Shown: positions 1-64,000 of the stretch, in pieces
How the letters are laid out: every line of letters starts with the position of its first letter
How positions within the stretch are numbered: position 1 is the stretch's first letter
Sequence record: NC_027364.1
Direction: 5' to 3' (one strand)
DNA: 64,000 nucleotides
Made by a program: the position numbers and the translations under genes
The notes under the pieces: model-generated
Databases searched by the model: none
What the model saw: only the letters and a program-made list of their open reading frames with translations
What the model was told of the DNA's origin: nothing

Positions 1-312
1 GCTCTTCATTTCTGCGAATATGTTTTTCTTCACCTTTATGATTTTTGTAAGTATATGCACAACGCATAATGGCTAATCGAACTTCACCTGCTTTGGTGAT
101 AGTGTATGAATGTATTGCATTATCATAATCACTTTCCCATTTCTGACCAGCATATTCGTACCAAAGTTCATTAGTTTCCCATTTAATGAAATCAAATTCT
201 AACAAACTGTCAATCAACTTAGCCAAATTACCACTGTACTCACGGCTAATGATATTGAAACCACCATTGTACTTTGCAAGGTACAGAATCTTTTCTTGTG
301 TTACATTTTTCA

Positions 313-651
313 TTACATGTAATCCTTGATGTATTTTAGCAGTTTAGATTTCTCTTCGGTACTTAATGATTTCTTGTTCATTAAGTGTTTCATTTCTTGA
401 CGTTCAATTTCTTCACATCTTTTAGATTCAGCTTCAATTCGTGTATTATATTCTTCGTCAGTTTCTTCTCTGGTCCAAATTACATTGTATCCATGAAAAC
501 CGCCGTAACCACCGTCGGGTGAAAGACTAATGGGACCGTTATATTCAGCACGATACTTATTAAGAGTGTCAATAAAGGTATCAATGCCACACGGTTCAAT
601 TTCAATATAACCAATCACTACAGTAACGTCAATTTTGTTCATAAAGTTCAC
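313..651 (-). CDS. hypothetical protein
   Basis: 112-aa ORF on the dominant coding strand with AGG SD. Confidence 0.7.
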   Translation of the reverse strand: MNFMNKIDVTVVIGYIEIEPCGIDTFIDTLNKYRAEYNGPISLSPDGGYGGFHGYNVIWTREETDEEYNTRIEAESKRCEEIERQEMKHLMNKKSLSTEEKSKLLKYIKDYM

Positions 652-669
652 CTATAAAATTAGGGAGCA

Positions 670-1227
670 TTAGCTCCCTTTGTATTGATGTTTACGTTTA
701 GTACTGTATTTCCAGCCAGTACTGTGTCTTGTTCTGATATCGTCCCAATACGATGGTAATGAACGCATCTTACGTCTTCCACGTATTTCAGGTTCCCCCT
801 CATCCTTCAGTACTGCACAAGCCATACGACGCTCTTGCTGAGTCTTAGGACGCTTGTATCGGGAGTGGTTATGTTTGTACATATACGAACGCTTATGTCG
901 CCATTCCTTATCACGAGCTTTACGTTTATGTTCCCAGTACTCATTATAGAGTATCATGTATTCACCCATAAGTAAATCAGGAGATACAAGTAATCCTTTT
1001 TCAGTACAAAGATAATAACCTACGAACTTTTCTGGATACATTTCGTAATAGAAACGGTTCTTCCAAAATGTTTCACGATTCTTTTTGTTGAATTCAGCTA
1101 AATCGAATTTCATCTTACTGTGGAAACGGTCTATACCGTCATGTTCCGCAATGTACTCTAACAGATTATCAATAATCTCAACTTTACCAGAATCGTGATA
1201 CAACGTAAATGTTTGGTCAAAAAACAT
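670..1227 (-). CDS. hypothetical protein with basic, Trp-rich C-terminus
   Basis: 185-aa ORF preceded by AGGAG SD. Confidence 0.75.
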   Translation of the reverse strand: MFFDQTFTLYHDSGKVEIIDNLLEYIAEHDGIDRFHSKMKFDLAEFNKKNRETFWKNRFYYEMYPEKFVGYYLCTEKGLLVSPDLLMGEYMILYNEYWEHKRKARDKEWRHKRSYMYKHNHSRYKRPKTQQERRMACAVLKDEGEPEIRGRRKMRSLPSYWDDIRTRHSTGWKYSTKRKHQYKGS

Positions 1228-1323
1228 ATGAAATCTCCTTTAAGTTAAAATAACCTAATGGAAAGTCATTCTTCCTTTAATACATGTTCTCATGATTTGT
1301 TCCTTTTGTCAAGATATAGATAT

Positions 1324-1349
1324 AAAAAATCCCTGCCAAAAGACAGGGA
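1324..1349 (-). terminator. intrinsic terminator
   Basis: minus strand TCCCTGTC-TTTT-GGCAGGGA then T6. Confidence 0.75.
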
Positions 1350-1453
1350 CGAAAAACTGAAATAACACATGGAGTTCTTTTTAATTTAATAAAAAGTATT
1401 ATTATTCTTATAAAAGTATTTATTAAGAACTCCACAATATGGCTTCAAATGAA

Positions 1454-1642
1454 TCAAAAACCTTTCTGAGCTACTAGTTCGCGGTACTGTGCACGAGTTA
1501 GTACACCTTGTTTGCGTAGAGCTTGTAGACCGGATAGGGTTTCACTCTTACGTTGTTCGTACATACGTTGTTCTTTAGATTGAATAACTTTCTCTTTCTT
1601 AACTTTTGCTACTGGTTCTTGTTTCTTAGGTTGTTTAGCCAT
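1454..1642 (-). CDS. small basic protein
   Basis: 62 aa, Lys/Gln-rich, GGAG SD. Confidence 0.7.
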   Translation of the reverse strand: MAKQPKKQEPVAKVKKEKVIQSKEQRMYEQRKSETLSGLQALRKQGVLTRAQYRELVAQKGF

Positions 1643-1673
1643 TTTATATCTCCTTCTGTATTATGATAACAAC

Positions 1674-1707
1674 ATTATATCATGTATGGGACATTATGTC
1701 CCATACA
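1674..1707 (-). promoter_or_regulatory. extended -10 promoter overlapped by a 25-bp palindrome
   Basis: TG-A-TATAAT at 1674-1682; GGGACA 17 bp upstream; arms TGTATGGGACAT/ATGTCCCATACA at 1683-1707. Confidence 0.6.
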
Positions 1708-1710
1708 ATA

Positions 1711-3150
1711 TTACATATTTTCTTCAGCAAATTCTGCAAGTGGTGAACGAACAACACCTTCTAGTTCGATGACACGACAACCTGCCCAATCTTTAAACTT
1801 CTCAGTTACATATGTCAAACCACTGTTAACAGGACTAATAAACTTACTGTCAATCTGACTCAAGTTACCCATAATTACTACTTTACAGTTTAATCCTGCT
1901 CGTGTCAAGATTGTTTTGGCTTGTGCAGGTGTAATGTTTTGGAATTCATCAACTACTAGAATAGTGTTGGTGAATGAACGTCCACGTACAAAGTTTAGTG
2001 CTTTAAATTGAATAACATTACGTTTCATAATCTCTTCAATACTACCTTGTGGGTTAGCATCATCTTTATGAAGAAACTCTAACGCGTCAATTGCGGCTCC
2101 ACAGAATGGAATCACTTTTTCTGCTTCTGAACCTGGCAAGAAACCAATATCTTCAAACTGTGAGTCTTGAGTTTTAGAGAAGATGATTCGGTCGTATTTA
2201 CGTTTTTCCAGTACTAATTCTAATGCAGTAGCAATCGTAATTAGTGTTTTACCAGTACCCGCAGAACCTAGCAGTACTGTTAGATGTACATCAGGATCGA
2301 GAATACTGTTGATGGCGAGTGCTTGTTGGATATTCTTTGCTTTAATATCCCATACTTTAGCACGTAAAGCTACTGATTGTCCAATATCTTGGAATACCAA
2401 AATATCTTCTGGTGTTAGTGTTCCATCATCTTCCTCAATTGCTGATTGACCTTCGTACACAAATAATACGTCTGCATCATCATATAGATAATCACCGATG
2501 CATAGATTTTGTGGGAGCAAATGCTCAATCAAGCTTTTGGAAATGTAATGATACAAACGACGACCAACTTGTTCGGATTGAATATTAGTATTGGTTAAGT
2601 TGCTATATACTTCCCAAAAATTAATTTCCAAATGGTGTTGACCAATGTGAATCAAATCACTATCACCAATAACAATATCATGGCGATAATCTTGTACCTC
2701 GACACCATAACTTAGTGCTTTGATACGCATGTTGATATCACGAGTTACCAGTACTGATTCTGTTGCTAAAGCTACCAGAATGATTTTATCATCAGGTACT
2801 GTGCTTTTGAGAAGGGTTTGAACTTTCTCTTCTGAACCTTTAGTACGAATTAGTGCTTCAGCTTCTTCGTTTGTAATAACAAACAATTTGCTATCAGGAT
2901 TCATATTGGTATGAACATCAGCAATATTAACACCAGTACTACTAATCTCATCATGTGATGCATCTGCAATAATTGCTTCAATGTTACGAATAGCAACACG
3001 AGCATCGCGTGAAACATCTACATTACGACTCTTAATTGAATCCAATTCTTCCAGTACTGTAAATGGTAGAATGATTGCAGCACCATCAAAAGCAATAGAT
3101 GCATTAGGGTCAGATAGTAGTACGTTTGTGTCAATTGTATATTTTTTCAT
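1711..3150 (-). CDS. phoH: PIN-PhoH (PhoH2/YlaK-type) ribonuclease-ATPase
   Basis: PIN motifs IDTNVLL, VLEELD, DDKI, TRDINMRIKA; PhoH ATPase GSAGTGKT, IGFLPG, RGRS, VDEFQN, GNLSQID. Confidence 0.93.
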   Translation of the reverse strand: MKKYTIDTNVLLSDPNASIAFDGAAIILPFTVLEELDSIKSRNVDVSRDARVAIRNIEAIIADASHDEISSTGVNIADVHTNMNPDSKLFVITNEEAEALIRTKGSEEKVQTLLKSTVPDDKIILVALATESVLVTRDINMRIKALSYGVEVQDYRHDIVIGDSDLIHIGQHHLEINFWEVYSNLTNTNIQSEQVGRRLYHYISKSLIEHLLPQNLCIGDYLYDDADVLFVYEGQSAIEEDDGTLTPEDILVFQDIGQSVALRAKVWDIKAKNIQQALAINSILDPDVHLTVLLGSAGTGKTLITIATALELVLEKRKYDRIIFSKTQDSQFEDIGFLPGSEAEKVIPFCGAAIDALEFLHKDDANPQGSIEEIMKRNVIQFKALNFVRGRSFTNTILVVDEFQNITPAQAKTILTRAGLNCKVVIMGNLSQIDSKFISPVNSGLTYVTEKFKDWAGCRVIELEGVVRSPLAEFAEENM

Positions 3151-3210
3151 AAAACATCCTTGAGTTATGAGTACATCCTTGTACTCGACTAATGTTATTG
3201 ACTCGGATTA

Positions 3211-3830: not shown

Positions 3831-3839
3831 GTTAAACTC

Positions 3840-5146: not shown

Positions 5147-5149
5147 TCC

Positions 5150-6292: not shown

Positions 6293-6916
6293 TTATTGTT
6301 TGACTGAACCGTAAAAAACCAGTTCTGGTTTTGTTAATATTACAACATCTTCACCACGAGAACGACTAACTCTAAATAGAACTTCTGGTGGGATTCCATT
6401 TGCTGCATATAGTGAAAAAAGGAAACCTACCTTTGTTGCCATTTCTTCGGTAAAAGTTGATAGCTGTCTTACAGACACAAATGAATTATCACCATCAGTA
6501 ACATTACTTTTAATCGAAATGTTATGAAGACCCAGTACTGAGCGATTTGTCATATATCGCTTTTCGGGAGATACACTAAAGAATACCACAGTACATGCTG
6601 AATTGCAATACCTAGAAACAATTAAATTTATCCCATTGTCTCTAACAAAGTTTGCCATTCGAATACCTGCATCAAAATCACCACCAGGAGATGTAATTGT
6701 GATGGTATCATAGTGTTCTTTATCATACAACTCTATCATTCTCTTGAGTGACCCATCTGTAATATCTGATATGAAATATACATTTCGGGTTTCAGGATTA
6801 TACTTTATCACATTTTTACTTTCAATACCAGCACTGGCTGGAAAATTTATTAACAATAGAAACATTGCTGCTTGTATCACTTCAAGCCATAGTCTTTTCA
6901 TATAACAAGTCCTCAA
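6293..6916 (-). CDS. exported ClpP/crotonase-like peptidase
   Basis: signal-like N-terminus; ITITSPGGD..AG, CNSACT, LGLH motifs. Confidence 0.75.
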   Translation of the reverse strand: MRTCYMKRLWLEVIQAAMFLLLINFPASAGIESKNVIKYNPETRNVYFISDITDGSLKRMIELYDKEHYDTITITSPGGDFDAGIRMANFVRDNGINLIVSRYCNSACTVVFFSVSPEKRYMTNRSVLGLHNISIKSNVTDGDNSFVSVRQLSTFTEEMATKVGFLFSLYAANGIPPEVLFRVSRSRGEDVVILTKPELVFYGSVKQ

Positions 6917-6936: not shown

Positions 6937-6965
6937 ATAATATAGTACTTAAACACTTAAGTCAA
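6937..6965 (-). promoter_or_regulatory. sigma70-like promoter
   Basis: TTGACT-17 bp-TATTAT. Confidence 0.6.
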
Positions 6966-10944: not shown

Positions 10945-11385
10945 CTATTTTACTGGAATATTTGAAAAGAAATCAGTCATCCAATACGCCGTCTCTTTGT
11001 TGAATAATACTGGATCAAACTTAAGTAACTCAACATGACTTGTATCATACACGCTTGTATCGGTAATGTCAAACAAAGTTTTAGTACTGAATAGTGGATT
11101 ACTCACTAGAAAGTAGTAATCAGCAGTAGTGCTAATGTCATCATAAAACACACCGTCATACCATCCATCATCATATACATAAACAGAATCGTCATGAAGA
11201 TAGTAAACTTCTATATGTAAACTCAAGTTCTTCATGGTTTCAATCATTTTTGCCGTATGAGGATTTAACTTATTGACATTTTCAAACACATAAGAGTGTT
11301 TTTTATTCATATCAACAAATGAAAATATTCGTACTGAACGTATATTCATATTACTCCAAATAAACAAGTGAATTAATGAAATCAT
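10945..11385 (-). CDS. hypothetical protein
   Basis: ORF in the operon run; true start may be internal. Confidence 0.65.
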   Translation of the reverse strand: MISLIHLFIWSNMNIRSVRIFSFVDMNKKHSYVFENVNKLNPHTAKMIETMKNLSLHIEVYYLHDDSVYVYDDGWYDGVFYDDISTTADYYFLVSNPLFSTKTLFDITDTSVYDTSHVELLKFDPVLFNKETAYWMTDFFSNIPVK

Positions 11386-11734
11386 ATTTCAATTTATCAT
11401 CAACATAATTCAAATCAACTTTAATCATCGGAGCATGGGAACGTATAGACAGTGTTTCCATAAAGTACTGATTAAGTTTGTATGTATGGAAAAGATGAAT
11501 ATCTCGTTTCAATACCACCATTACTTCCCCGAACAGATCACAGAGTTCAACTTCAGTGTTAGTTGGGTCAAACCCATAACGATTCTTTAATGTACGTGGT
11601 TCTTTATTTCGATAATAATGCACAGCTTTATTACTATTCACTAACAAGTGATGATATGCATTACTATAAACTGAGCAAATAACTCGGCTTGGATAATTGG
11701 TATATTCTGGTAGTTCAAAATAAATTAATGACAC
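11351..11734 (-). CDS. hypothetical protein
   Basis: 127 aa, GAGGA SD. Confidence 0.7.
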   Translation of the reverse strand: MSLIYFELPEYTNYPSRVICSVYSNAYHHLLVNSNKAVHYYRNKEPRTLKNRYGFDPTNTEVELCDLFGEVMVVLKRDIHLFHTYKLNQYFMETLSIRSHAPMIKVDLNYVDDKLKYDFINSLVYLE

Positions 11735-11746
11735 AATATCCTCTCA

Positions 11747-12550
11747 TTAAATTTCAAATACAAATTTAGGATTGTAATCAAAATTCTCACAAGCTCCACT
11801 GTATGATTCATAGCCTCGTGGATTACAAATGATACGTGTCTTACCAATGTGGTAGTCAAAACTACTATGAACATGACCATGAATCCAAACATCAGCACCC
11901 AAATCTTCAATGTACTGATCCATATCGGAACAGTAACAACCATTCAGTGAATCATTTTTATATTTTGGTGAAACACTTTGATAACTTGGTGCGTGATGGG
12001 TAACCACGATGACCTTGAAATCATTATCATGCATAAAGCGAACTGTGTCAATAGAATTTTTGATAAATTGTTTATCTTTGTGATGCATAAACTCAGTATC
12101 ATCTGGTGTCAGTTTCTTACGCCAAGGCTCTGATGTTGTTCCATGACGGATATGTTTGTAATCGTTCATCTTCTGACAAGCATCAAACTTCGTCAAAGAA
12201 TTACCTTTATCGAAGTCTGTCCACAGAGTACTACCAACAAGCAGTACTCCATCCAGCCATACAAATTTGTTTTGCAAAAAGATGAAATTTGGAATCTCAT
12301 CTTGCATATCGGACAGTACTTTATGCGTTTTGTGGATATTGGAACCATAATATTCATGATTGCCAGGAACCAGTACTACATTCTTAAACTGCTTACATAG
12401 TGATTCTATACCAGTACGGTAACGACTGCGTTTAACTTCATCGAAGTCCCCAGCAATAATCAGTACTGTATCACTGTAATCACCACTATGGAGGTAATCA
12501 GTCCCACCGTGTACATCAGATGTTACAACAAATTTCATAATTACCTCCAA
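11747..12550 (-). CDS. calcineurin-like metallophosphoesterase
   Basis: SDVH, AGD, PGNHEYY, GSTLWTD, VTHHAP, WIHGHVH, NPRGY. Confidence 0.92.
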   Translation of the reverse strand: MEVIMKFVVTSDVHGGTDYLHSGDYSDTVLIIAGDFDEVKRSRYRTGIESLCKQFKNVVLVPGNHEYYGSNIHKTHKVLSDMQDEIPNFIFLQNKFVWLDGVLLVGSTLWTDFDKGNSLTKFDACQKMNDYKHIRHGTTSEPWRKKLTPDDTEFMHHKDKQFIKNSIDTVRFMHDNDFKVIVVTHHAPSYQSVSPKYKNDSLNGCYCSDMDQYIEDLGADVWIHGHVHSSFDYHIGKTRIICNPRGYESYSGACENFDYNPKFVFEI

Positions 12551-12557
12551 TAAATGG

Positions 12558-13976
12558 TTAACCTAATGCGTCAATAATACTGTTTGAGAACACTTCAACT
12601 GCACTCTCACGAATTTCTAAGATACGAGTATAATCATCACAAGTGTTTTTGTCAAATCTAAATTCAATAAACACTGGTAAGAACAGTGATGGCTCACCAG
12701 TACGCTTGTCGAATACAATGTCATTACACTCAACTGTAACCACTTTACCAATAAGTTCTTGCATTCTTTCCCAAATGGTTTTAAATGTCCATTCAGCATC
12801 TTTCTCTTTGATACCAGTACCCACATTAACTTTCAATGAACCACAAGCACTTTCCAGTTGTAAAGAACCTAGGCTTCCTTTACGTTTACCTTCACCTTCA
12901 TTGAAACCAACAATACGTAAGTCCAGTTGCATTTTCAATTTCATTTTCAACTGCTTAGGTGAAGTATGAGATTTCCAGATACCATCTTCACATTTCAGTA
13001 CTGAACCCTCTTCACCTTCGTTCATTAGTTCACTATTGTACTCAAATGCTTCTTTAATGTTTAGAACTTTACGGAATCCAACCATACGAACAAAATCACT
13101 ATTGAGTTCGTTAATTGCATCTACTAAGATCTCGCGACGTTCTTTACGTTTTACATCCCATACACCTTCACAAAATGCATCATATGGAACAACATCCCAT
13201 AGAACGAATACAGTACGCATTGCTTCATTCTGACTGATGCTATCTTTACCAGCTTTCTGAATTATACCGTTGCCAGTAGTGCGTGGGAGAATGGTTTCTC
13301 CATCATTGTCCAGTACTACACCTTCCCCCATAAAGACCACACCACTACTAAAACGTTCATCTTTACTTTGGATGATGTGAGCAAGACCTGCCATCTCACC
13401 ATCACGACAACCCAGGAAGTCGTATAGTTTACCATTACGGGATGTAGAAGTTAATGAACCATTAATGACAACGTGGTTCAAGTACTGACCATCCATTTTC
13501 ACTTCTGATATAGCGTAACCATAATCTTTGAAGTTGATGTTCTTTGCAGTCTTTTTGTCAATCAAAGAACAACGCATATATGGTTCGTCTTTAATAAAGC
13601 CTTTACCAAATACATCATTGCAGTTCTTTTCTTGAATACCACAATCAAGGTTTTTAGTAAGCATTTTACGGAGAACTTCTTGATCATCTTCTGATACTGA
13701 ACCCAGTACTGAAGCAATGAAATCACGCCCCGCATTTCCTGTCACATCACGCTTGTAAATGCATTCTAACTTATCAATTGCTTCATCTAACGTCATATGT
13801 TGATATACGTCATCAGCGTCAGGGAGCTTCTTATAGCCACTTACGATAGAAGGGTCTAGAGTATATTTCAGTACTTTTTGTAAAGTTACATTATCTTTAT
13901 TTTGTTCAAGAATAGCTTTTTTGCCTAGTGTACTGCTAGTATTTTTAATGCTTTCAAGAATTGCTAAAATGCTCAT
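12558..13976 (-). CDS. lig: ATP-dependent DNA ligase (T4 gp30-like)
   Basis: motif I EVKMDG, motif III MGEG, WDVV, EGSVLK, KMK, C-terminal OB fold with SLFLPVF..R.DK. Confidence 0.95.
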   Translation of the reverse strand: MSILAILESIKNTSSTLGKKAILEQNKDNVTLQKVLKYTLDPSIVSGYKKLPDADDVYQHMTLDEAIDKLECIYKRDVTGNAGRDFIASVLGSVSEDDQEVLRKMLTKNLDCGIQEKNCNDVFGKGFIKDEPYMRCSLIDKKTAKNINFKDYGYAISEVKMDGQYLNHVVINGSLTSTSRNGKLYDFLGCRDGEMAGLAHIIQSKDERFSSGVVFMGEGVVLDNDGETILPRTTGNGIIQKAGKDSISQNEAMRTVFVLWDVVPYDAFCEGVWDVKRKERREILVDAINELNSDFVRMVGFRKVLNIKEAFEYNSELMNEGEEGSVLKCEDGIWKSHTSPKQLKMKLKMQLDLRIVGFNEGEGKRKGSLGSLQLESACGSLKVNVGTGIKEKDAEWTFKTIWERMQELIGKVVTVECNDIVFDKRTGEPSLFLPVFIEFRFDKNTCDDYTRILEIRESAVEVFSNSIIDALG

Positions 13977-19790: not shown

Positions 19791-20050
19791 TATTGTTCCT
19801 CGTATAATTCTATATCATCAATTCCAACTTGGCGAATTGCAGTACTTCTGTTGAATGTATTTTTTTCAAACAAACATACTGTTAAACGTATTTCACACTT
19901 CAATGCACTGTAATAAATCATATCAATAACACCATATGTTTCATACATTTCTACGTATACATTTCGACCTAAGTACTTTTCTTCTAAATCAGTAATTAGA
20001 CTATTGATAAGATTACCTATCTGTGTTATATCTGTGCGAAATTTATCCAT
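19790..20050 (-). CDS. small helix-plus-beta-barrel family protein
   Basis: KYLGRNVYV segment. Confidence 0.7.
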   Translation of the reverse strand: MDKFRTDITQIGNLINSLITDLEEKYLGRNVYVEMYETYGVIDMIYYSALKCEIRLTVCLFEKNTFNRSTAIRQVGIDDIELYEEQ

Positions 20051-20226
20051 TATAATAAACCTCTCACATAAAACATTGATGAAAATAGATAATCATCAGT
20101 ACTGGAATTTAGTAGTTTATCAAAACTATAATTTTTATGCTTATTTTCATACAAAGACAATCTATAGTATCGTTCTATATTTTCTAAGTAGTCTTTTCGT
20201 AATAACATCTGTGTTGTTACATTCAC
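20050..20226 (-). CDS. 58-aa protein missed by the ORF track
   Basis: GTG start, MNVTTQMLLRKDYL...VRGLL*, TAATG overlap with the next gene. Confidence 0.6.
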   Translation of the reverse strand: MNVTTQMLLRKDYLENIERYYRLSLYENKHKNYSFDKLLNSSTDDYLFSSMFYVRGLL

Positions 20227-20239
20227 TATAATGTACCTT

Positions 20240-20272
20240 AAAAGAAAAAGGGACCAATATATGATCCCTTTT
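20240..20272 (-). terminator. intrinsic terminator after pnk
   Basis: AAAAGGGATCA-TATAT-TGGTCCCTTTTT-CTTTT. Confidence 0.8.
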
Positions 20273-20275
20273 GTA

Positions 20276-21208
20276 TTAGAAATTTCCTTCAGCCACTTGG
20301 AAAACTTTCAACCCAAGTAGTTTACGCCACATGAATACAACTTGATCGCGGTCATCATATACCTTTTTAACATCGTAATGATCAACCACATTTTTCATGT
20401 ACAGGTCGAATTTTACAACATCATCAGGACGTTTATCATCGATATCTCGCATAAACAATGCATCGTAAGGAACACCCCAATTCTTAAGCCACTGTTCGGT
20501 ATCAGCACGACACCCTTCAGTACGCCCACTCATGACGATAATCTTGCGTTTATGAAAAACTGCTTCAGCGATAATAGACAAAATAACTTCTTCATCAGGT
20601 GTATCCTGAAGAACAGTACTTTCATCGTAAGGATTACGACCCCATTTATGAGCAAGAGTACCGTCAATATCAACGATAACAGCAGCTTCTCGTGAATTAC
20701 CATAGTAACCAATGTGCAATGCTTTACTATAATAGTACGTATCTGCCATAGTGTCAATGATATTATCTTGTACTGAACGCTCACGCTGGAGGTTATATTT
20801 CTTACAAAGTTTTACGAACTCTTTAATCTTAAAGAATTCATGAACATCTGCACCACGGTCTTCATTAGGTACAAAATCATCATAGAAGTTCTTTTCTTTG
20901 TAATCATAACCATTATCTATAGCCCATACTTTCCATAGATTACGGAAATGTTGTTTAAGGTTCGTATCGGATATGATGATGTTCCAACCATTCTCTGCTG
21001 CTGAATTTGCTGCACTGAACTGTAAATTAGTTACGTACTGCTCATTAGCATCGTTGAATTTGTAAGCATCATGTGACCCAGCCATAGATTCACGAATATC
21101 ATCACGGTTGATGTTGATAGTCTTGGATTTGGCGTTTTTAATCTCTTGCACTGCCCATGTAGTTTTACCACACCCAGGCAATCCAACTGTTAGTGTGATA
21201 GTTGGCAT
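20276..21208 (-). CDS. pseT: polynucleotide 5'-kinase/3'-phosphatase (T4 PseT-like)
   Basis: GLPGCGKTT P-loop, NRDDIR, IISDTNL; HAD phosphatase DIDGT, SGR, DDRDQVV. Confidence 0.95.
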   Translation of the reverse strand: MPTITLTVGLPGCGKTTWAVQEIKNAKSKTININRDDIRESMAGSHDAYKFNDANEQYVTNLQFSAANSAAENGWNIIISDTNLKQHFRNLWKVWAIDNGYDYKEKNFYDDFVPNEDRGADVHEFFKIKEFVKLCKKYNLQRERSVQDNIIDTMADTYYYSKALHIGYYGNSREAAVIVDIDGTLAHKWGRNPYDESTVLQDTPDEEVILSIIAEAVFHKRKIIVMSGRTEGCRADTEQWLKNWGVPYDALFMRDIDDKRPDDVVKFDLYMKNVVDHYDVKKVYDDRDQVVFMWRKLLGLKVFQVAEGNF

Positions 21209-21211
21209 CCT

Positions 21212-21541
21212 TTAATCCTCTAAAAATTTAACATGCTCTATATTATGATAAGTTAGCCATTCCTGTGGTGTTCCCTTGCGTATTAAAACACCAATATACG
21301 CAATACCATTAATTAGACCATTACTATCAGTATTCACATCAACTTTCACAATCTCGGAATCGTACCAGTGTTTGAATGTGTAATCCCAACATCTGACTTT
21401 CTTCCCAATAAGATTGCTCTTGTATTTGTCAATCATTTCATCGACGATAGTTTGTACTGAATTTTTAATTTCAGCTTCTACTGACTTTATATATAGTAAA
21501 TTACTTTGTGCATTGTTTATCATTATATTTTCCAACTCCAA
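21212..21541 (-). CDS. small helix-plus-beta-barrel family protein
   Basis: NLIGKKVRC segment. Confidence 0.7.
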   Translation of the reverse strand: MELENIMINNAQSNLLYIKSVEAEIKNSVQTIVDEMIDKYKSNLIGKKVRCWDYTFKHWYDSEIVKVDVNTDSNGLINGIAYIGVLIRKGTPQEWLTYHNIEHVKFLED

Positions 21542-21737
21542 ATCGCTTGGAGATTTTCACAAGTACAGATTCATCACAACGAATACTAGCAGTATCATTG
21601 GATGAACTGTACTTTAATGGGGTCCACTGTAATTGAGATTCTTCTAGGAACTTGATACATCTGAAGTAATCTTTCAGAGAAAGAAATTTAACTACTGACA
21701 TATCCTGAACAATACTATGCTGAACTTCAACTTTCAT
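21501..21737 (-). CDS. hypothetical small protein
   Basis: 78 aa, AGGAG SD. Confidence 0.65.
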   Translation of the reverse strand: MKVEVQHSIVQDMSVVKFLSLKDYFRCIKFLEESQLQWTPLKYSSSNDTASIRCDESVLVKISKRFGVGKYNDKQCTK

Positions 21738-21746
21738 ATGAACTCC

Positions 21747-22004
21747 TTATAGTGGATCAAATTTATTTTCACGTTTCGATGTATAGCGAGTTACATCATG
21801 TATTCTCGGCTTAACACCTTTTGGTTTCCTTTTCTTCTTGTATTCAGTACTACTACATCCGAAGGTATTCTCGATTCGTTTCTTACTTATCTTCACACCT
21901 TTCATTGAGCGTTTGTGCTGTAATTCATCGATTTCTTCTTGTATTTTCCTGAACTCAGTCGGAGAAAGGGAACCGTCATTTTTATACTTAGGTTTAGCCA
22001 TCAC
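21747..22004 (-). CDS. small basic protein
   Basis: 85 aa, Lys/Arg-rich, GGAG SD. Confidence 0.7.
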   Translation of the reverse strand: MMAKPKYKNDGSLSPTEFRKIQEEIDELQHKRSMKGVKISKKRIENTFGCSSTEYKKKRKPKGVKPRIHDVTRYTSKRENKFDPL

Positions 22005-22031
22005 TTCTCCTTGTGCTTAGGCTAGATAGTA

Positions 22032-23174
22032 CTAAAAATCCTTTAGTACAATTTTCATGTATTTTATAAGAGTCTCTTTGTAATCAACTTTCTTATTGTT
22101 ATACATTGCAAAGGCCAAGCCCTGACGATTCAGTTCATTAGTTAAACACTCCTGAACCTTCATTGCGAATTCCTTTCGCTCCAAGTGCTTGTGTTCCTTG
22201 ACGAAGCTTTCTACTTCATCTTGTAATGCATTATAGCACGAAAATACCAATTGTTCCATTCTTAATATCTTTTGCATAGCATATTCATCAGTACTGAACA
22301 ATTGTTTTAAATCATCACTAGAACCATTTAATACTGCTTCATATAAATGAGAATCAATAATAATACTATCTTTTGTAAGATGTAATGAACTGTACCAGTC
22401 AGTCTTTATTTTACACATTGTCCCATTATTTAGGATGCACACAAAACCCTCAATATCAAGCATTTTATGAACTTCCTCCACGCTTTCACGGAAGGTATTT
22501 CGTACCGGAAAAGTGTGATGAATATCTTTTCCAGTCATATTAGTACTGTACTGTGCAAGACATGGAAACTTATCACGTAGTGCTTTACCACAAAGCAACT
22601 CACCACTCACACGATGACGAACGTTCAGTACAAACAGTTGTTCTACCTGATATGGTAATACAATTCGGTACTCTGGACTTGTATACTCCATATTAACTGT
22701 GTAACCTAAACGTTCCGCTTCGTCGATGTACTGATACAAATTCTGGTTCTCGTTAATAAGTCGAGTACTGTTAATCGCATGGTCAGAATACAATGCAGTA
22801 TGTGATTTACAACGAATCTCACCATCATTATCACGATAAGTACTGATGATCGAGCCATCCAACTTAGGCATCACTACCGCAATGTCATCGCATGTGGTGT
22901 TAGCAGGGAACATTGTAGCAGGATTCTCGTAAGCATTGAAGAACTTTTTCATTGTACGTGCTGCACAACGTATCATGTCACCTTCTTCATCAATTTCCCA
23001 CATAGAGCCACGGGTTTCCAACGCATTTGGTTGCATGAAATCAGTGTATGATGCTAGACGATAACTGAATACACGATACGTGCCACCAGCAGGACTTTTA
23101 TGATCCACATAAAAGAATGCATCGTTTGTATTACATAAGTGCATTAAATCTTCATATATTTGCAAAAGGGTCAT
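22032..23174 (-). CDS. rnlA: RNA ligase 1 (T4 RnlA-like)
   Basis: FSYRLASY..F, ETRG, KKFFNAYEN, motif I KLDGS, MEY, EGFV, KIKT.WY..LH. Confidence 0.93.
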   Translation of the reverse strand: MTLLQIYEDLMHLCNTNDAFFYVDHKSPAGGTYRVFSYRLASYTDFMQPNALETRGSMWEIDEEGDMIRCAARTMKKFFNAYENPATMFPANTTCDDIAVVMPKLDGSIISTYRDNDGEIRCKSHTALYSDHAINSTRLINENQNLYQYIDEAERLGYTVNMEYTSPEYRIVLPYQVEQLFVLNVRHRVSGELLCGKALRDKFPCLAQYSTNMTGKDIHHTFPVRNTFRESVEEVHKMLDIEGFVCILNNGTMCKIKTDWYSSLHLTKDSIIIDSHLYEAVLNGSSDDLKQLFSTDEYAMQKILRMEQLVFSCYNALQDEVESFVKEHKHLERKEFAMKVQECLTNELNRQGLAFAMYNNKKVDYKETLIKYMKIVLKDF

Positions 23175-26430: not shown

Positions 26431-26575
26431 TATGCAAAGTAAACCCTAAACCAACACCGACAAATGGAAATAGTAAATTGATATACCAAGTATTAATTGA
26501 TGAAAGGAAACAAATCCCACATACTGTCAGTACTGCCAATGAAAAAAGACTCCAGATAAAAAATACTGTTCTCAT
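26399..26575 (-). CDS. 58-aa two-TM membrane protein missed by the ORF track
   Basis: MRTVFFIWSLFSLAVL...KDYNENK*, ATGA overlap with the upstream gene. Confidence 0.6.
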   Translation of the reverse strand: MRTVFFIWSLFSLAVLTVCGICFLSSINTWYINLLFPFVGVGLGFTLHSVCKDYNENK

Positions 26576-29934: not shown

Positions 29935-30468
29935 TTATTTCCTCATGTATTTTATAACGTCTTCAAATAATTGTATTTTTAAGTCCTCGTCATTTCCAGG
30001 TAAAAACTCACGAAAACTATCAAAATCTTCATTTTTTGCGAAGTTACGCATTTGTGTTGAGCTATATTGACTTACATTACGGTCAATACCTGCTTGAATT
30101 GCTTTTATACTACAAAAATTATACAACTTACCATTGTACATGTCAAGAGTTTTTTGAAAAGAATCAATACGGTCAGAACCACATATGAAAAGAACATCTA
30201 AGTACTTTCCATCCAGTTCTCTCATTATATCAAATAGATTGTCTTCTGTGTAGATGTTCTCTTGTACTGAAGGATAGAATCCCTCTGTATAATACATTTT
30301 TAGTTCAGGTGGGAGTGGGTTTTTTATATTGTCAGTACTGGTGCTTAGATATATTTTTAAATCAGCATTGTACTGTTCTTGTAATGTTTTGGCCTTTTCA
30401 AAAACTAAACCATGACCATTGTGGACTGGGTTACATCTCATAAATGATAATACGCATGTTTCTTTCAT
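29935..30468 (-). CDS. HxGH nucleotidyltransferase (cytidylyltransferase-like)
   Basis: RCNPVHNGH, NPL, GSDR, SSTQMR motifs. Confidence 0.85.
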   Translation of the reverse strand: MKETCVLSFMRCNPVHNGHGLVFEKAKTLQEQYNADLKIYLSTSTDNIKNPLPPELKMYYTEGFYPSVQENIYTEDNLFDIMRELDGKYLDVLFICGSDRIDSFQKTLDMYNGKLYNFCSIKAIQAGIDRNVSQYSSTQMRNFAKNEDFDSFREFLPGNDEDLKIQLFEDVIKYMRK

Positions 30469-30986
30469 AAATTCTTCATCACCAACCCAAGAGATTTAAG
30501 ATAATTGATTTTAGCAGTGGTTAAGTACTTATCCAGTACTATCAGACACGAAGGAAATGGTGCTGAATCTGTTTTCTTATCGGGTTCTTCTGGTATACCA
30601 AATCTCAATCTTCCCTTAATAAAACAAATACAATCACATATTTTAGCAGCATAATCCTGAAAAGCAATTGTATCGGTTCTTGAGGGTACAAGAATAACTA
30701 CAGTTGCCCCGTTATTATATGCATCTACTGCTTTAGATAACCAAGTTTTCAAGTCACTATATGGTGGATTCAACCAAACTATATTATTTCCCCAATCCTG
30801 TGACAGTGAATCATCTTCTGGAGTGAAAAAATTATCACACAATGCAGTTTCTTTGACACATGCTGCATCTAGTGTAAATTCCCAGAGTTCATCCAAATCT
30901 TCAAAGAAATCCTTTGGAGTTGTCCAGTTATCTTTTCCAGTACTAAAATGTACTGAATGTTTTTTCGAAGCATCCTTCTTCGACAT
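30465..30986 (-). CDS. phage N6-adenine DNA methyltransferase (Dam-like phage family)
   Basis: WTTP, FTLDAAC, LSQDW, VWLNPPY, LVPSRTDT, FIKGRLRF, SAPFPS. Confidence 0.92.
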   Translation of the reverse strand: MSKKDASKKHSVHFSTGKDNWTTPKDFFEDLDELWEFTLDAACVKETALCDNFFTPEDDSLSQDWGNNIVWLNPPYSDLKTWLSKAVDAYNNGATVVILVPSRTDTIAFQDYAAKICDCICFIKGRLRFGIPEEPDKKTDSAPFPSCLIVLDKYLTTAKINYLKSLGLVMKNL

Positions 30987-35266: not shown

Positions 35267-35740
35267 TTACTCCAAACTAGGATCTTTAACTGTTAGACTT
35301 TCTATGTCACTCGCATAAAGAACTACATTGGATTGATTTTCAGATACTTTAAAGTCGTGATAACTGTCTTTTACGATAAAATTATCTAATATAAACCCTT
35401 TACTACAGCACATCATAATTTTATCATCTTTGATTGTGTAGGTGTTTTTCTTTTTACGTACTTCAGATTGTGGCGTAATACTATCGTTATTACGAATAAC
35501 ACAATCAATATATTGTTCATTTGTACTCATAGGCATACCCATGATAAACGAGTTTTCAGTACTGATTGTTAGTATAAAAACGTTAGTATTTGGGTTGTGA
35601 AAAAAATCATGCATTGTCTTGCTACACAAAAATAGACATTGAATAATGTCCTTCACATTAAACATTATATCATGAACTTTGAATGCGTCCAACTCTAAAA
35701 TGTCATCAATTTTCCCATTTTCAACAGTTTTAATCTCCAT
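35267..35740 (-). CDS. hypothetical protein
   Basis: 157 aa, AAGGA SD. Confidence 0.75.
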   Translation of the reverse strand: MEIKTVENGKIDDILELDAFKVHDIMFNVKDIIQCLFLCSKTMHDFFHNPNTNVFILTISTENSFIMGMPMSTNEQYIDCVIRNNDSITPQSEVRKKKNTYTIKDDKIMMCCSKGFILDNFIVKDSYHDFKVSENQSNVVLYASDIESLTVKDPSLE

Positions 35741-35782
35741 GATCTATCCTTGATCTTCTAATGCACTCCATGTGCGTTTTTA

Positions 35783-36280
35783 TTAAGTCACTGCATTATA
35801 CTTCTCTATAGCATTAGTAATATTTAATATAGCTTCAGGAACCATTTCTTTATTGTATTCACGTTTTAAATTTTCCATTTTCTTAATAATTTCCAAGAAA
35901 AATGGCAAAATACATGAAGTATCTGTAAAATTACATGAGTACAAAGTACTCATTTGAAATAATTCACCTGAATCAATATTAAGAGTATTGTATTCCTTAA
36001 CAATGTTTTCGTTTGAATTGAAAATGTGAAATACTGTTCCCATGTGATGAAGATATACACCATTCTCATTTTGAATATTGCATGGTGTGATTACAATAGC
36101 AGTGTTGTCAATATTATTTACTATTGATAAACGCAGACTATGTAAACCAAAAATAACAGTGCAATCACTTGAACTGCTTTGAATTTGGTCAGCAGTTTGT
36201 GTAACACTTGTAATATTTTCTCCATCAAGACAACTCTTGATTTTATCAAATGAATTTTTCATTGATTTAGTTAGATACAT
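35783..36280 (-). CDS. FQ-box family protein
   Basis: DSGELFQMSTLY. Confidence 0.75.
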   Translation of the reverse strand: MYLTKSMKNSFDKIKSCLDGENITSVTQTADQIQSSSSDCTVIFGLHSLRLSIVNNIDNTAIVITPCNIQNENGVYLHHMGTVFHIFNSNENIVKEYNTLNIDSGELFQMSTLYSCNFTDTSCILPFFLEIIKKMENLKREYNKEMVPEAILNITNAIEKYNAVT

Positions 36281-48810: not shown

Positions 48811-49361
48811 AATAGTTCCTTATACATATTATGTACTTTACAAATCTCATTATAGTATTTCATATCAATATCATTTGTATTAAAAACGGAAACAGACAAT
48901 ACCGCTAAATCATCAATGAAGTAATTATTATCGGCGTACTCTTTTAACTTATTGAACATATAGATGCATTTTATACTTAATTCATCATGCAACACACTGT
49001 TCTGAAAAATATTCTCTTCAGTATTAGGAGATAAGTAATCTTCAATTATATACGATAAACTACTATCGCAATCTTTATAGATTGAAATTGATGGATGTAA
49101 TGTGTCATACATTACACAAAACAGATCACCGTCATATGTGGATATTAAACTATTATTGGAAACAGTAGGATGATAATATTTCAGTACTGAAAACTTTGAA
49201 CAATCAGTGCAGTAAAAATGATCCATCCCTCGACGACTTTCGTATGAGAATAGTTTACTTGTATATTCAATCCCTTTGGTGCGACGGATTGTTTCATGCA
49301 TTTCATTGCATTGCATTAAAATTACCATACGTTCAAACGCAAGATCTAAATCATCGTACAT
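48801..49361 (-). CDS. FQ-box family protein
   Basis: NTEENIFQNSVLH. Confidence 0.75.
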   Translation of the reverse strand: MYDDLDLAFERMVILMQCNEMHETIRRTKGIEYTSKLFSYESRRGMDHFYCTDCSKFSVLKYYHPTVSNNSLISTYDGDLFCVMYDTLHPSISIYKDCDSSLSYIIEDYLSPNTEENIFQNSVLHDELSIKCIYMFNKLKEYADNNYFIDDLAVLSVSVFNTNDIDMKYYNEICKVHNMYKELLCQ

Positions 49362-58845: not shown

Positions 58846-58855
58846 TACCAAAACG

Positions 58856-58883
58856 AAAAAAGCCCATATCTTACGATACAGGC
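58856..58883 (-). terminator. intrinsic terminator
   Basis: GCCTGTATC-GTAA-GATATGGGC-T6. Confidence 0.8.
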
Positions 58884-61277: not shown

Positions 61278-61438
61278 TAATGTTCTTCTCTTAAAAATCG
61301 TTTGATAGCATAATCTAAATAAAATTCATAACACATGCTATCTCTGTTCTTTATCCATATTTTGTAATCGGATTTTATATTACGCAACAAATAATTTGTA
61401 TTAATTGTGTAATAATCTAATCGCCCTAATCTTTCCAT
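61277..61438 (-). CDS. 53-aa protein missed by the ORF track
   Basis: MERLGRLDYY...RFLREEH*, TAATG overlap. Confidence 0.55.
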   Translation of the reverse strand: MERLGRLDYYTINTNYLLRNIKSDYKIWIKNRDSMCYEFYLDYAIKRFLREEH

Positions 61439-61812
61439 TTAATAGGATACTCCTTTCCTTGTACTATATATGACAAAATCCATCCGTAATGAATAGGATG
61501 ATTTTTATCTGAATCAGGAATAAAATATAAAGCTGTACTTGGATTATGACTGAATAAATCTTTATTGTCAAATGTAAAATGTGATAATATAATTTTCCTT
61601 GTACTTGGACGAATAACATTCTTAACACTGAACTCTGTTCCTTTGTATTTCTCCGAGAATTCAAATAATGCATCTGTAATTAAATCACTGAACTCTTGGA
61701 TTACAAAATTCTGATAAAATGCATTAATCTCTTTTAACTCTGTATACAATTCACTTCTGGTATTCAAAAGGAATATTACTTGTTTAAGATCCTGTACTAT
61801 TGTTGGGTTCAT
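61426..61812 (-). CDS. helix-plus-beta family protein
   Basis: EKYKGTEFSV segment. Confidence 0.7.
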   Translation of the reverse strand: MNPTIVQDLKQVIFLLNTRSELYTELKEINAFYQNFVIQEFSDLITDALFEFSEKYKGTEFSVKNVIRPSTRKIILSHFTFDNKDLFSHNPSTALYFIPDSDKNHPIHYGWILSYIVQGKEYPIKWKD

Positions 61813-62071
61813 ATTTGTTTATCTCATTATGTACCTTAAGCATAAAAATTTGCATATGAATTTTTTGTTCAAGGTGCTTGATAAATTTCTGTACTGTATC
61901 TTCTTGATCTTTTGTACCAAGATAAAATAACATATTAAATTCAGATAATCTCAGAGAGAAATCTTCCTCTCCCCCTCGTAAACAAAAATCCCTGTACTTT
62001 GAAGCGTACAATAAAGAATCTACCTTTTTATATATTTGGGTCTGCATTGTATCTCCATTTTCAAGGACCAT
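61784..62071 (-). CDS. LGTxxQE small-protein family
   Basis: MLFYLGTKDQED. Confidence 0.7.
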   Translation of the reverse strand: MVLENGDTMQTQIYKKVDSLLYASKYRDFCLRGGEEDFSLRLSEFNMLFYLGTKDQEDTVQKFIKHLEQKIHMQIFMLKVHNEINKYEPNNSTGS

Positions 62072-62232
62072 ATGAGCTTATCAACGCATTGATCCTGTGC
62101 TATTGTCCCTAGATAAAATAATACATCAAAATCTGATATTTTGATATTAAAAGGATCGGTGTGTACATTTTTAATAAACTCCCTGTACTTCATTTCATAT
62201 GCATTAGGTATATTCTTATATGTCAATTTCAA
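62020..62232 (-). CDS. LGTxxQE small-protein family
   Basis: VLFYLGTIAQDQ. Confidence 0.7.
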   Translation of the reverse strand: MKLTYKNIPNAYEMKYREFIKNVHTDPFNIKISDFDVLFYLGTIAQDQCVDKLIWSLKMEIQCRPKYIKR

Positions 62233-62533
62233 TGATCCTCCCTGACATACCTTGTATTAGCTTATCATACATATCGAGCATCACTTTTTGAATACTAATT
62301 AGTACTGGCATCGTGCAAATATCAATGTCGTATACTAAGCTGTACTGGAATAATTCATCTTCCTGCATTTGTACTAAATTAGGTAAAAGATAATTGTCTG
62401 CCTCTTCATCCTGGTACTTGAAATGCATAACACCATCCTTTTTGTACAAAAGAATGTCAATATCACCCAACTCTTCGGCATAACCAAATATACATATATT
62501 AGATGTTTTTGCTATATTAAATTTCATCTCCAC
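62216..62533 (-). CDS. FQ-box family protein, short class
   Basis: MQEDELFQYSLVYD. Confidence 0.75.
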   Translation of the reverse strand: MEMKFNIAKTSNICIFGYAEELGDIDILLYKKDGVMHFKYQDEEADNYLLPNLVQMQEDELFQYSLVYDIDICTMPVLISIQKVMLDMYDKLIQGMSGRIIEIDI

Positions 62534-62769
62534 CTCTCTCCGTCAGCACAAGAGTACTGGTACGTTGTCGTTAGGGTAGGGACCATGTTCGTAATGGGCA
62601 TGTTGTTAACAATAACCGTAACAGGCATAAGAATCGTCTCTACTCTACTCTGTCCTGTCCTTGTGCAATTCATCTTCTGCATTTCATCTGAATCCATGAA
62701 ATACAATACAAATGGTGCAATCCCAAGAACAATACACAAGACGATAAGGAAATTTAAAAAATTTAACAT
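62524..62769 (-). CDS. membrane-anchored small protein
   Basis: N-terminal TM helix, two Cys in the soluble part. Confidence 0.7.
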   Translation of the reverse strand: MLNFLNFLIVLCIVLGIAPFVLYFMDSDEMQKMNCTRTGQSRVETILMPVTVIVNNMPITNMVPTLTTTYQYSCADGERWR

Positions 62770-62830
62770 AATTTTCTACCCTAATGATTAACGTACAGGT
62801 ACTATATCAGTAATGAAAAGTACTGTCAAG

Positions 62831-63226
62831 CTAGTATTGCACTGTTCTAATGAAAGTACCTTTACTCATGGATTTAAGCTTATGAACCTCTTCCTGTATA
62901 CCCTTGATTAACCCTAAAGGTATAGGTACATCATGTACTAAGCTGTACTGAAAGTATTCTTCTTCAGATAAAGTACTAACATCTGGAACGCCAATTTTAG
63001 TTAGATAATCTTGATGTGTTGACCAATAAATTATATCTTCAGTACTATTGTACTCCCCATATACTGAACAATATTGATGAATATCTTTCCTGTACCCTTG
63101 AGCAATAAAGAACTTATCTACTGCATTACCAGCATTAATAGAATTCACTTCGATTGTCACAGTACTTGAGCTTGTATAACTCTTAATATTATCAGTACTC
63201 AACTGTGTGTTCTTCATAATCACCAT
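62831..63226 (-). CDS. FQ-box family protein, short class
   Basis: LSEEEYFQYSLVHD. Confidence 0.75.
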   Translation of the reverse strand: MVIMKNTQLSTDNIKSYTSSSTVTIEVNSINAGNAVDKFFIAQGYRKDIHQYCSVYGEYNSTEDIIYWSTHQDYLTKIGVPDVSTLSEEEYFQYSLVHDVPIPLGLIKGIQEEVHKLKSMSKGTFIRTVQY

Positions 63227-63536
63227 TAGGCTCCTGTTTAGATTCTTTCATTAGTACTATCATCTTATGTACTAATGGCATAGGAAACTCTAAATCCCAT
63301 ACTAATGATTCCTGAAAGTATTCCTCTGGTGATAAAGTACTTAAATCTTTAATATCAACGTGCTTGTATATTTTATTTTCGTAATTAACAAATGATATAT
63401 ATAAATCACTAACATAAGAATCATAGGTAATTGTGAATGGCTTACCCTTGTAATCCATTACATCTCTACATAGACTACTTTTGATATATGTATGTTCAAA
63501 TGATTTATATACCTTGAGTTGTATATTAGTTTTCAT
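63192..63536 (-). CDS. FQ-box family protein, short class
   Basis: LSPEEYFQESLVWD. Confidence 0.75.
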   Translation of the reverse strand: MKTNIQLKVYKSFEHTYIKSSLCRDVMDYKGKPFTITYDSYVSDLYISFVNYENKIYKHVDIKDLSTLSPEEYFQESLVWDLEFPMPLVHKMIVLMKESKQEPNGDYEEHTVEY

Positions 63537-63801
63537 ATTTCTCTTTATTAGCTTGTTTGGTTTTATAGTGAATTAAATCTATTAATGTAATCAAGTACAA
63601 CGTCAAATAGTACTCTTGTTGATCTGTACCTAATGATACAAAGAACTTGTGCTCATAGATTAAAACCTGTTTCTCTTCAAATGGACATTTAATCCTCTGT
63701 ATAGGCTTAAGTAAATGATAGTACTTATTAAATCTATGATACATTTCTAGTTCTGTCAGTACTTTCATATTAAACATGTACTCCATTAGCAGTAGCATCA
63801 C
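63526..63801 (-). CDS. LGTxxQE small-protein family
   Basis: FFVSLGTDQQEY. Confidence 0.7.
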   Translation of the reverse strand: MMLLLMEYMFNMKVLTELEMYHRFNKYYHLLKPIQRIKCPFEEKQVLIYEHKFFVSLGTDQQEYYLTLYLITLIDLIHYKTKQANKEKYEN

Positions 63802-63991
63802 GTAAAGCTGTCAAATACTTCTGTACGGCTTGCTCTTGCTTATTTGTACCTAAAAGTATATACATCCATAATTCACTGTAATGTACATCTTGTGTATAAG
63901 GGTTGTTGTAACTTTTTGATAATATAGCATCAAATTCAGATGCATGAACCCTTGTGAACTTAAGAATATCTTGTTGTGTTATGATTCTCAT
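63770..63991 (-). CDS. LGTxxQE small-protein family
   Basis: MYILLGTNKQEQ. Confidence 0.7.
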   Translation of the reverse strand: MRIITQQDILKFTRVHASEFDAILSKSYNNPYTQDVHYSELWMYILLGTNKQEQAVQKYLTALRDATANGVHV

Positions 63992-64000
63992 ATCTTTTCC

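Follow-up and report, generated by a model that had tools for sequence, protein, structure and literature searches.

Purifying selection on AGTACT, a highly iterated palindrome of jumbo phage PBECO4 and its RaK2-like relatives, and the possible nature of its reader

The 64,000-nucleotide window analysed here is identical in sequence to positions 62001-126000 of the genome record of Escherichia phage PBECO4 (NC_027364.1, Asteriusvirus, 348,113 bp). It carries a large, dispersed excess of the tetranucleotide GTAC, of the hexameric palindrome AGTACT surrounding it and of the octamer CAGTACTG. The selected unit is the hexamer AGTACT, which is under purifying selection at silent sites. With a probability of roughly 0.4 we propose that AGTACT is a selectively maintained, clade-specific and highly iterated palindrome serving as recognition site of a candidate phage-encoded, two-fold symmetric (homodimeric) DNA-binding factor; the value is kept at this level because no candidate protein was found. 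Positions are given in window coordinates unless marked “record”. The remainder of the PBECO4 genome and pieces of related genomes were added for motif context, PBECO4 being the only phage in the comparison of AGTACT frequencies which is represented by its whole genome. In the literature searched, no report of GTAC or AGTACT enrichment in RaK2-like phages was found.

Throughout the window (1-64000), in all codon frames as well as in intergenic DNA, we count 542 copies of GTAC, 192 of AGTACT and 42 of CAGTACTG, compared to 189, 21.4 and 0.6 copies expected from base composition; a maximal-order Markov model predicts 336 copies of GTAC (z 11). The whole 348-kb genome harbours 891 AGTACT sites instead of the 118 expected, which corresponds to a 7.6-fold enrichment. 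Every 10-kb bin of the genome is enriched, with a peak at 100-170 kb; the lowest enrichment is found in core replication and structural genes, while the density is highest in early and accessory regions. A preliminary description of this DNA, made from its letters alone, had obtained 20 GTAC and 6 AGTACT by a hand count in positions 1-2300. Our count reproduces both numbers exactly and adds three copies of CAGTACTG, the first at 717-724 and the others at 808 and 2272. The over-representation had been described there as independent of the reading frame, and this is borne out: GTAC is distributed over the three codon frames as 170/178/160 and AGTACT as 80/41/61, and genes, which hold 182 of the 192 AGTACT sites of the window, contain them in all frames. 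The 6.4 kb of non-coding window DNA is enriched as well, both in GTAC (37 vs 17.4 expected, P 3e-5) and in AGTACT (10 vs 2.0, P 5e-5). The spacing of sites is near-Poisson, and a helical periodicity, which we looked for, is not present. A dispersed repeat or mobile element as carrier of the motif is ruled out by this spacing and by the lack of any sequence information farther out than 7 bp on either side.

The frequency of the word might be a by-product of coding, brought about by Ser-Thr, Gln-Tyr and Val-Leu dipeptides, by codon bias, by phage transfer RNAs or by expanded families of small genes. In fact, a (Y)FQxST motif recurs in many of the small genes at 35-63 kb, with AGT-ACN encoding its Ser-Thr, and this creates a local bump of sites, which is, however, not the cause of the enrichment. 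The preliminary description had held amino-acid choice to be insufficient as an explanation and had made this view depend on the excess outlasting shuffles of the codon or dicodon type. If synonymous codons are permuted within each gene, which preserves protein sequence and codon usage, GTAC is still found 508 times vs 342, AGTACT 182 times vs 49 (z 19-21) and CAGTACTG 41 times vs 3.8, and under this model these three rank first among all 4-mers, 6-mers and 8-mers, respectively. A shuffle of third codon positions which retains every dinucleotide leaves an excess of AGTACT (182 vs 115, z 11) and of CAGTACTG (41 vs 16.6, z 8.8). In the first 35 kb alone, with the small-gene arrays at 35-64 kb left out, AGTACT is present 101 times vs 25 (z 19). 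A codon or amino-acid artefact is thus refuted by three null models and by the exclusion of the gene arrays. Taken together with the equal representation of frames, the enriched non-coding DNA and the constrained silent positions described below, these results render a coding origin of the excess practically negligible.

Evidence for selection comes from the alignment of the window with the genomes of phage 121Q (95.4% identity) and phage WPEC3 (85.6% identity, window positions 2-33711 covered). Among 145 frequent 6-mers, AGTACT is the best conserved between PBECO4 and WPEC3, 78.6% of its copies being retained compared to 46.5% overall and to 47.9% for 6-mers lying in the same frame within its own flanks. 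The per-base divergence of about 0.15 drops to 0.01-0.10 exactly across the six bases of AGTACT. To separate this from protein conservation we considered third codon positions of only those codons whose amino acid is unchanged. Inside AGTACT 12 of 165 such positions differ from WPEC3 (7.3%), whereas outside any GTAC the proportion amounts to 25.0% (Fisher P 7e-9); the same codons elsewhere would give 44.5 silent changes. Against 121Q, nine silent changes are observed inside AGTACT and 24.2 are expected (P 0.001). GTAC lying outside AGTACT exhibits the background rate of silent change (23.0%). Conservation of sites at synonymous positions, on whose absence the preliminary description would have been abandoned, is therefore clearly present. 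The turnover of sites is balanced, as 71 are shared, 19 occur in PBECO4 and 121Q but not in WPEC3, and 17 are confined to WPEC3. In the early region 89.9% of AGTACT copies are conserved in WPEC3 compared to 71% of all 6-mers. Since AGTACT is both in excess and retained at silent codon positions, something reads the word on the DNA.

Alignment of all 2382 GTAC sites of the genome reveals that information is confined to positions -2 to +5, where it forms the mirror-symmetric pattern C-A-GTAC-T-G. Among the NGTACN palindromes, AGTACT (891 copies) is followed by TGTACA (197), while GGTACC and CGTACG are completely absent; in addition, GTACG is disfavoured at motif sites. Outside the core the symmetry is weak and decays gradually up to about 14 bp. 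TCAGTACTGA accounts for 47 of the 191 CAGTACTG sites (10-bp step, P 6e-8), TTCAGTACTGAA for 15 of these 47 (12-bp step, P 8e-5) and ATTCAGTACTGAAT for five of these 15 (14-bp step, P 0.02). All five copies of ATTCAGTACTGAAT lie beside early promoters, in DNA which is intergenic or free of open reading frames (ORFs). Palindromes of 12 to 14 bp are concentrated in two regions rich in promoters, both of them beyond the window (record 148-154 kb and 206-210 kb).

The association with promoters is most pronounced at record 133-152 kb. This region contains about 19 strong sigma70-type early promoters of the form AAAAAGTACTTGCA-(N16)-GTATAATGTTTTACATCGAG, each followed by a GC stem-loop (examples lie at record 143,833 and 151,020), and in these promoters AGTACT is invariant and directly abuts the -35 hexamer. 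In at least five promoters, all of them outside the window, CAGTACTG is fused to the -10 box (CAGTACTGTATAAT), so that its TG creates an extended -10 element. A fixed spacing to the -35 or -10 box holds for these about 19 and at least five promoters, none of which is located in the window; promoter-borne sites altogether comprise about 20-40 of the 891 copies and do not form the bulk of them. Within the window, too, a few intergenic sites touch -35-like or -10-like boxes, but most sites reside in genes. A palindrome graded to 14 bp and fused to early-promoter boxes looks more like the target of a dimeric DNA-binding protein. The cassettes of promoter and stem-loop precede very small ORFs and are well conserved in WPEC3. 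Close to them, 2 kb without any annotated gene (record 151,710-153,706) contain divergent perfect sigma70 promoters, ten copies of CAGTACTG, a 53-bp direct repeat holding two of the 14-bp palindromes and 8-bp tandem repeats at record 152,540-152,650. This ORF-free stretch possibly acts as an origin or as a control region; a search of record 151.7-153.7 kb against Rfam gave no match to a non-coding RNA.

A sequence-biased mutation or repair process, of the type of very-short-patch repair or biased gene conversion, could drive the genome towards AGTACT and leave the sites without function. Such a process would agree with a pressure which acts genome-wide, in all frames and also in non-coding DNA. 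The transition neighbours AGTATT and AATACT are mildly depleted (0.74), being the only one-step neighbours for which this is the case; yet only about 28 neighbour sites are missing compared to about 133 excess sites, and AGCACT and AGTGCT are enriched. This pattern therefore indicates no simple drive by deamination and repair. Furthermore, the preference is graded, symmetric to 14 bp and concentrated at promoters, gains and losses of sites are balanced while orthologous sites are strongly retained, and the annotation of the PBECO4 record names no Vsr-like repair gene. We thus regard biased repair as an improbable cause. A further point in its favour, resembling incomplete amelioration, is that the only significant GTAC-free gap of the genome coincides with the gene of a probably mobile endonuclease. 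This gap, 1637 bp in length (record 173,972-175,609), spans gp305 and gp306, the latter annotated as “endonuclease”. In RaK2 the homologue occupies a different position, flanked by uvsX and an exonuclease gene. This suggests a mobile gene which entered the genome recently and has yet to acquire the motif.

The distribution of the trait was assessed by the ratio of observed AGTACT copies to those expected from base composition. Besides the whole genome of PBECO4 (7.6x), strong enrichment is found in 121Q (8.9x), WPEC3 (9.2x), Klebsiella phage RaK2 (6.9x), two pieces of Cronobacter phage GAP32 (6.8x and 10.4x), Serratia phage BF (11.1x) and Xanthomonas phage XaC1 (11.7x). Hence Asterius-, Alcyoneus-, Mimas- and Eneladusvirus as well as XaC1 are enriched (7-12x), whereas depletion is observed for Pseudomonas phage PA5oct (100-140 kb; 1 vs 13.3 expected), Sinorhizobium phage Phosso (0 vs 10) and T4 (6 vs 17; GTAC 0.51x). 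The trait belongs to the clade of RaK2-like jumbo phages which infect Escherichia, Klebsiella, Cronobacter, Serratia and Xanthomonas. An effect of the host family is ruled out, as the Xanthomonas phage XaC1 is enriched while T4, which grows on E. coli, is depleted. A 50-kb sample of E. coli K-12 contains three AGTACT sites instead of the 11.6 expected, so that the phage, at 2.6 vs about 0.06 sites per kb, is about 40 times richer in the word. PA5oct, whose GC content is similar, has its own most over-represented words, TCTGCA/TGCAGA and CTGCAG (15 vs 3), and CTGCAG is also the top hexamer palindrome of T4 (16 vs 5). An iterated palindrome of the AGTACT type in PA5oct finds no confirmation at the level of 8-mers, neither PA5oct nor T4 possessing an enriched 8-bp palindrome. 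A link to CTGGTG or Chi-like words was likewise discarded, since these bear no relation to the AGTACT motif.

The depletion in T4 and PA5oct bears on a further explanation, according to which a phage enzyme that cuts or nicks DNA, such as a type II topoisomerase, a nickase or a recombination-initiating nuclease, prefers AGTACT, and the word is dense in order to speed decatenation or recombination-dependent replication of the 350-kb genome. The symmetric 8-bp shape with its 4-bp GTAC core would suit a dimer cutting with a 4-base stagger, and the phage does encode topoisomerase II subunits as well as several HNH and GIY-YIG nucleases. T4 and PA5oct, however, are related phages which replicate by machinery of the same type and are AGTACT-depleted, and the fusion of sites to promoters is left unexplained. 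We accordingly consider this explanation highly improbable. The preliminary description had also thought of a packaging or recombination factor; a role of the motif in either process finds no support.

Alternatively, the reader of the sites could be a host protein, for instance SlmA, a nucleoid-occlusion factor which, once bound, would prevent infected cells from dividing. The SlmA box (GTGAGTACTCAC) indeed contains AGTACT as its central hexamer, and the close relative Sharanji, for which no division inhibitor is known, provokes filamentation of infected cells. The 12-bp box, however, needs G and T at positions 1 and 2 and a purine at position 3. At the phage sites GT occupies the first two positions in 4.6% of cases compared to 6.0% in the background, C and T together make up 64% of position 3 and G 10%, and a single GT.AGTACT.AC is present in 348 kb. 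Positions 1 to 3 thus rule out that the phage sites are SlmA boxes. In addition, the trait is shared by a Xanthomonas phage and T4, which uses the same E. coli host, is depleted. The odds of a host reader are accordingly remote. Biased repair, a cutting or nicking enzyme and a host reader are all weaker than a phage DNA-binding factor or a methyltransferase as explanations.

The methyltransferase explanation is strengthened somewhat by the remarkable contrast between AGTACT and other palindromes of the same length. From the window 27 of the 64 possible 6-bp palindromes are absent, and 23 are missing from the whole 348-kb genome, although 31 copies are expected there for each word with four G or C and eight for each all-GC word. 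CCATGG, CTGCAG, GGATCC, GGTACC, CGTACG, GAGCTC, GCATGC, GTCGAC and CTCGAG are among the purged words. A test of AGTACT for avoidance of the restriction type yields the opposite, a 7.6x enrichment. The preliminary description had called palindrome enrichment unusual for a phage, and it rightly appears so, as 23 other hexamer palindromes have been eliminated from the same genome. Under such restriction pressure a phage can retain 891 ScaI-type sites only if these are indispensable or in some way protected. GTGCAC forms an exception to the purge (77 copies, 2.5x), and GATC is found at 0.56x in PBECO4.

The candidate writer pointed to in the preliminary description is gp148 (30465-30986, minus strand), a 173-residue N6-adenine DNA methyltransferase of the phage Dam family which matches PF05869 at 2e-31 and contains the NPPY motif; its score of 89.6 bits with TIGR01712 lies below the cut-off of 97. 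The frame of gp147 (29935-30468, minus strand), a cytidyltransferase-like protein, overlaps it by 4 nt. Both gp148 and a gp147-type neighbour are syntenic in the seven AGTACT-rich lineages PBECO4, 121Q, WPEC3, RaK2, GAP32, BF and XaC1, which suggests that gp148 and gp147 constitute a functional pair. In the relatives' pieces the Dam-family and cytidyltransferase-like genes, adjoining or near each other, are located at 11476-12573, 11342-12445 and 19983-22665 (piece coordinates). The characterised members of the Dam family to which gp148 belongs are known as GATC-specific or non-specific enzymes. Pfam and PHROGs searches for another methyltransferase or for a DNA-binding protein, in the vicinity of gp148 and of the strongest palindromes, gave nothing informative.

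According to this explanation, AGTACT or GTAC is the target of gp148 acting as an orphan enzyme, and the sites are dense because once methylated they function as a self-mark, as protection or as an epigenetic switch on early promoters. It draws on gp148 being a true Dam-family methyltransferase with NPPY, on its presence together with its neighbour in all seven enriched lineages examined, on the perfect 6-bp palindrome, which represents a classic type of methyltransferase site, and on the purge of 23 other hexamer palindromes, which suggests that the 891 tolerated sites are protected. Moreover, PA5oct lacks the motif, and the main text of the PA5oct paper names no methyltransferase. The seven lineages with gp148, however, form one clade, so that their co-occurrence with the motif amounts to a single phylogenetic event. 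The nearest homologue of gp148 outside the clade, found in Paenibacillus phage Lily (43% identity), resides in a genome depleted of both GTAC (0.57x) and AGTACT (4 vs 13). Enrichment is not usual for the targets of orphan methyltransferases, so that the density of sites demands a separate reason, and the graded 14-bp palindrome exceeds the typical footprint of a methyltransferase. The clade's C5 methyltransferase (PF00145) is CpG-specific by bisulfite analysis according to the RaK2 paper, where this is reported as data not shown and where m5CpG is the sole modification described. Given this m5CpG specificity and the disfavour of GTACG at the sites, the PBECO4 C5 methyltransferase gp416 is unlikely to be the writer. 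On balance we consider it unlikely that AGTACT is dense as the target of gp148. As to the preliminary description, the enrichment itself is real, frame-independent and not driven by codons, while the link it had drawn to the NPPY methyltransferase at 30465-30986 is not established, as the co-occurrence rests on one clade and Lily is GTAC-poor. The content of DNA-modification genes varies within the clade: RaK2 carries a gene of the Mom family (PF25680; piece coordinates 35505-36089) between frd and dda, while PBECO4 has an RNase H gene at this place.

A homodimeric DNA-binding factor, in turn, fits best because it accommodates the graded symmetric word, the selection on the hexamer, the invariant copies in promoters, the gradient between early or accessory and other regions, the restriction to one clade and the contrast to the host. 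The dimeric protein would be made early or be delivered by the virion, and would bind to the long palindromes, these being its operators at early promoters, thereby timing early transcription or shutting it off. The same protein would occupy the numerous weaker intragenic hexamers and in this way coat or mark the phage DNA as distinct from that of the host. Several observations weigh against such a factor. The small proteins encoded adjacent to the strongest palindromes have no DNA-binding domain recognisable by Pfam or PHROGs. Most sites consist of a bare hexamer with uninformative flanks inside a gene, a pattern seen more typically with enzymes specific for 6 bp. The association with promoters was observed for a single genus; in the pieces of other genera that were analysed, the small number of promoter-fused cases is not convincing. 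The tolerance of 891 ScaI-type sites by a genome otherwise hostile to palindromes points toward modification, as it would be expected only if they were protected. Finally, that hundreds of weak intragenic sites are of benefit is conjecture. A methyltransferase target and the site of a DNA-binding factor are compatible, and both could coexist.

More broadly, AGTACT may be the identity mark of a viral system for self-recognition or epigenetic control. In such a system a symmetric reader, possibly assisted by a Dam-family writer, would tell phage DNA from host DNA and, by way of the copies fused to -35 and -10 boxes, would time the firing or the shut-off of early promoters. This idea is tentative, and we would sooner expect it to be wrong than right. 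If true, it would amount to a virus-encoded counterpart of HIP1, Chi or the DNA uptake sequences with direct regulatory output.

HIP1 (GCGATCGC) of cyanobacteria is a lineage-specific palindrome which is over-represented inside and outside coding sequences and better conserved than neutrality would predict, and a candidate methyltransferase is present in the genomes concerned. The analogy to HIP1 drawn in the preliminary description fits. Like HIP1, AGTACT is a short perfect palindrome which is iterated in many-fold excess in all frames and in non-coding DNA, is specific to a clade, is conserved above the neutral level and co-occurs with a Dam-family gene. It differs from HIP1 by its other, AT-rich sequence, by its carrier, a clade of lytic jumbo phages, by its gradation to 14 bp and by being built into early promoters. 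With Chi, KOPS and the DNA uptake sequences it shares the character of a dense short word, about 40 times commoner in its own genome than in the E. coli sample, which might identify the DNA as self. Those words, however, are read by a directional translocase and for this reason lack symmetry and have a strand orientation, whereas AGTACT is a palindrome with mirror-symmetric flanks and has no direction.

The boxes of SlmA (GTGAGTACTCAC) and Noc (ATTTCCCGGGAAAT) resemble the phage motif in being scattered palindromes of 12-14 bp which are bound by dimeric proteins, the centre of the SlmA box being AGTACT. They are present in tens of copies per genome compared to 891 copies of AGTACT, and the outer positions of the SlmA box are not matched in the phage. 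ScaI and Eco255I recognise AGTACT, while RsaI and CviQI recognise GTAC; of the isoschizomers CviQI and Csp6I, the former is blocked by GTm6AC and the latter is not (PMC3299994). Restriction-modification systems of this type thus share their recognition sequences with the phage words; phages normally avoid such targets, whereas AGTACT is enriched and conserved. T4-type phages possess PeSL cassettes, which consist of an early promoter plus a stem-loop. The cassettes at record 133-152 kb resemble them in having a strong early promoter followed by a GC stem-loop ahead of small ORFs, but an AGTACT box is not known as a feature of PeSL, and the likeness concerns about 20-40 of the 891 sites. AGTACT is hence no oriented word, no SlmA box and no mere promoter element.

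Among the individual sites of the window, two reach the 12-bp palindrome TTCAGTACTGAA; one (12994-13005) lies within the DNA ligase gene (12558-13976, minus strand), the other (49180-49191) within a small ORF. The sole fully intergenic CAGTACTG is found at 26528-26535. Two intergenic AGTACT copies on the minus strand have a promoter-like context, as far as can be judged from reading the sequence. The first (6944-6949) is situated just upstream of a -10-like TATATT in the arrangement TTGACT..AGTACTATATT, ahead of the protease gene at 6293-6901. The second (62819-62824) overlaps a -35-like box (TTGACAGTACT, 17 nt, TATAGT). All but one of the 128 complete annotated genes of the window are carried by the minus strand. 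These include the tandem arrays of small genes at 35267-63458, whose members, about 45-200 residues in length, are unassigned in function. By BLASTP, subfamilies of 10 and 8 members can be distinguished among them, and many others share the (Y)FQxST motif; arrays with similar gene sizes also exist in Serratia phage BF, GAP32 and XaC1. The 6-mers most depleted in the coding sequences of the window relative to the codon shuffle are TAAATA and TATTTA (8 vs 46-52), as if the T4-type late promoter TATAAATA were kept out of genes on either strand.

With one ScaI-type site per 390 bp and none for 23 common six-cutters, the restriction profile of PBECO4 matters for cloning, typing and engineering of the phage, and it bears on predicting which restriction systems are able to stop therapeutic phages of this group. 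To our knowledge, iterated palindromes of the HIP1 type have been without explanation for decades, partly since cyanobacteria are hard to manipulate. A signal of this type is now found in phages of Escherichia coli, Klebsiella and Cronobacter, which are culturable, so that the reader of the word becomes directly testable on the basis of measurable selection, a consensus of 6 to 14 bp, promoter-fused copies and a short list of candidate genes. The finding thereby bears on how jumbo phages which possess neither a nucleus nor base-substituted DNA distinguish their own DNA from that of the host and schedule their early genes.

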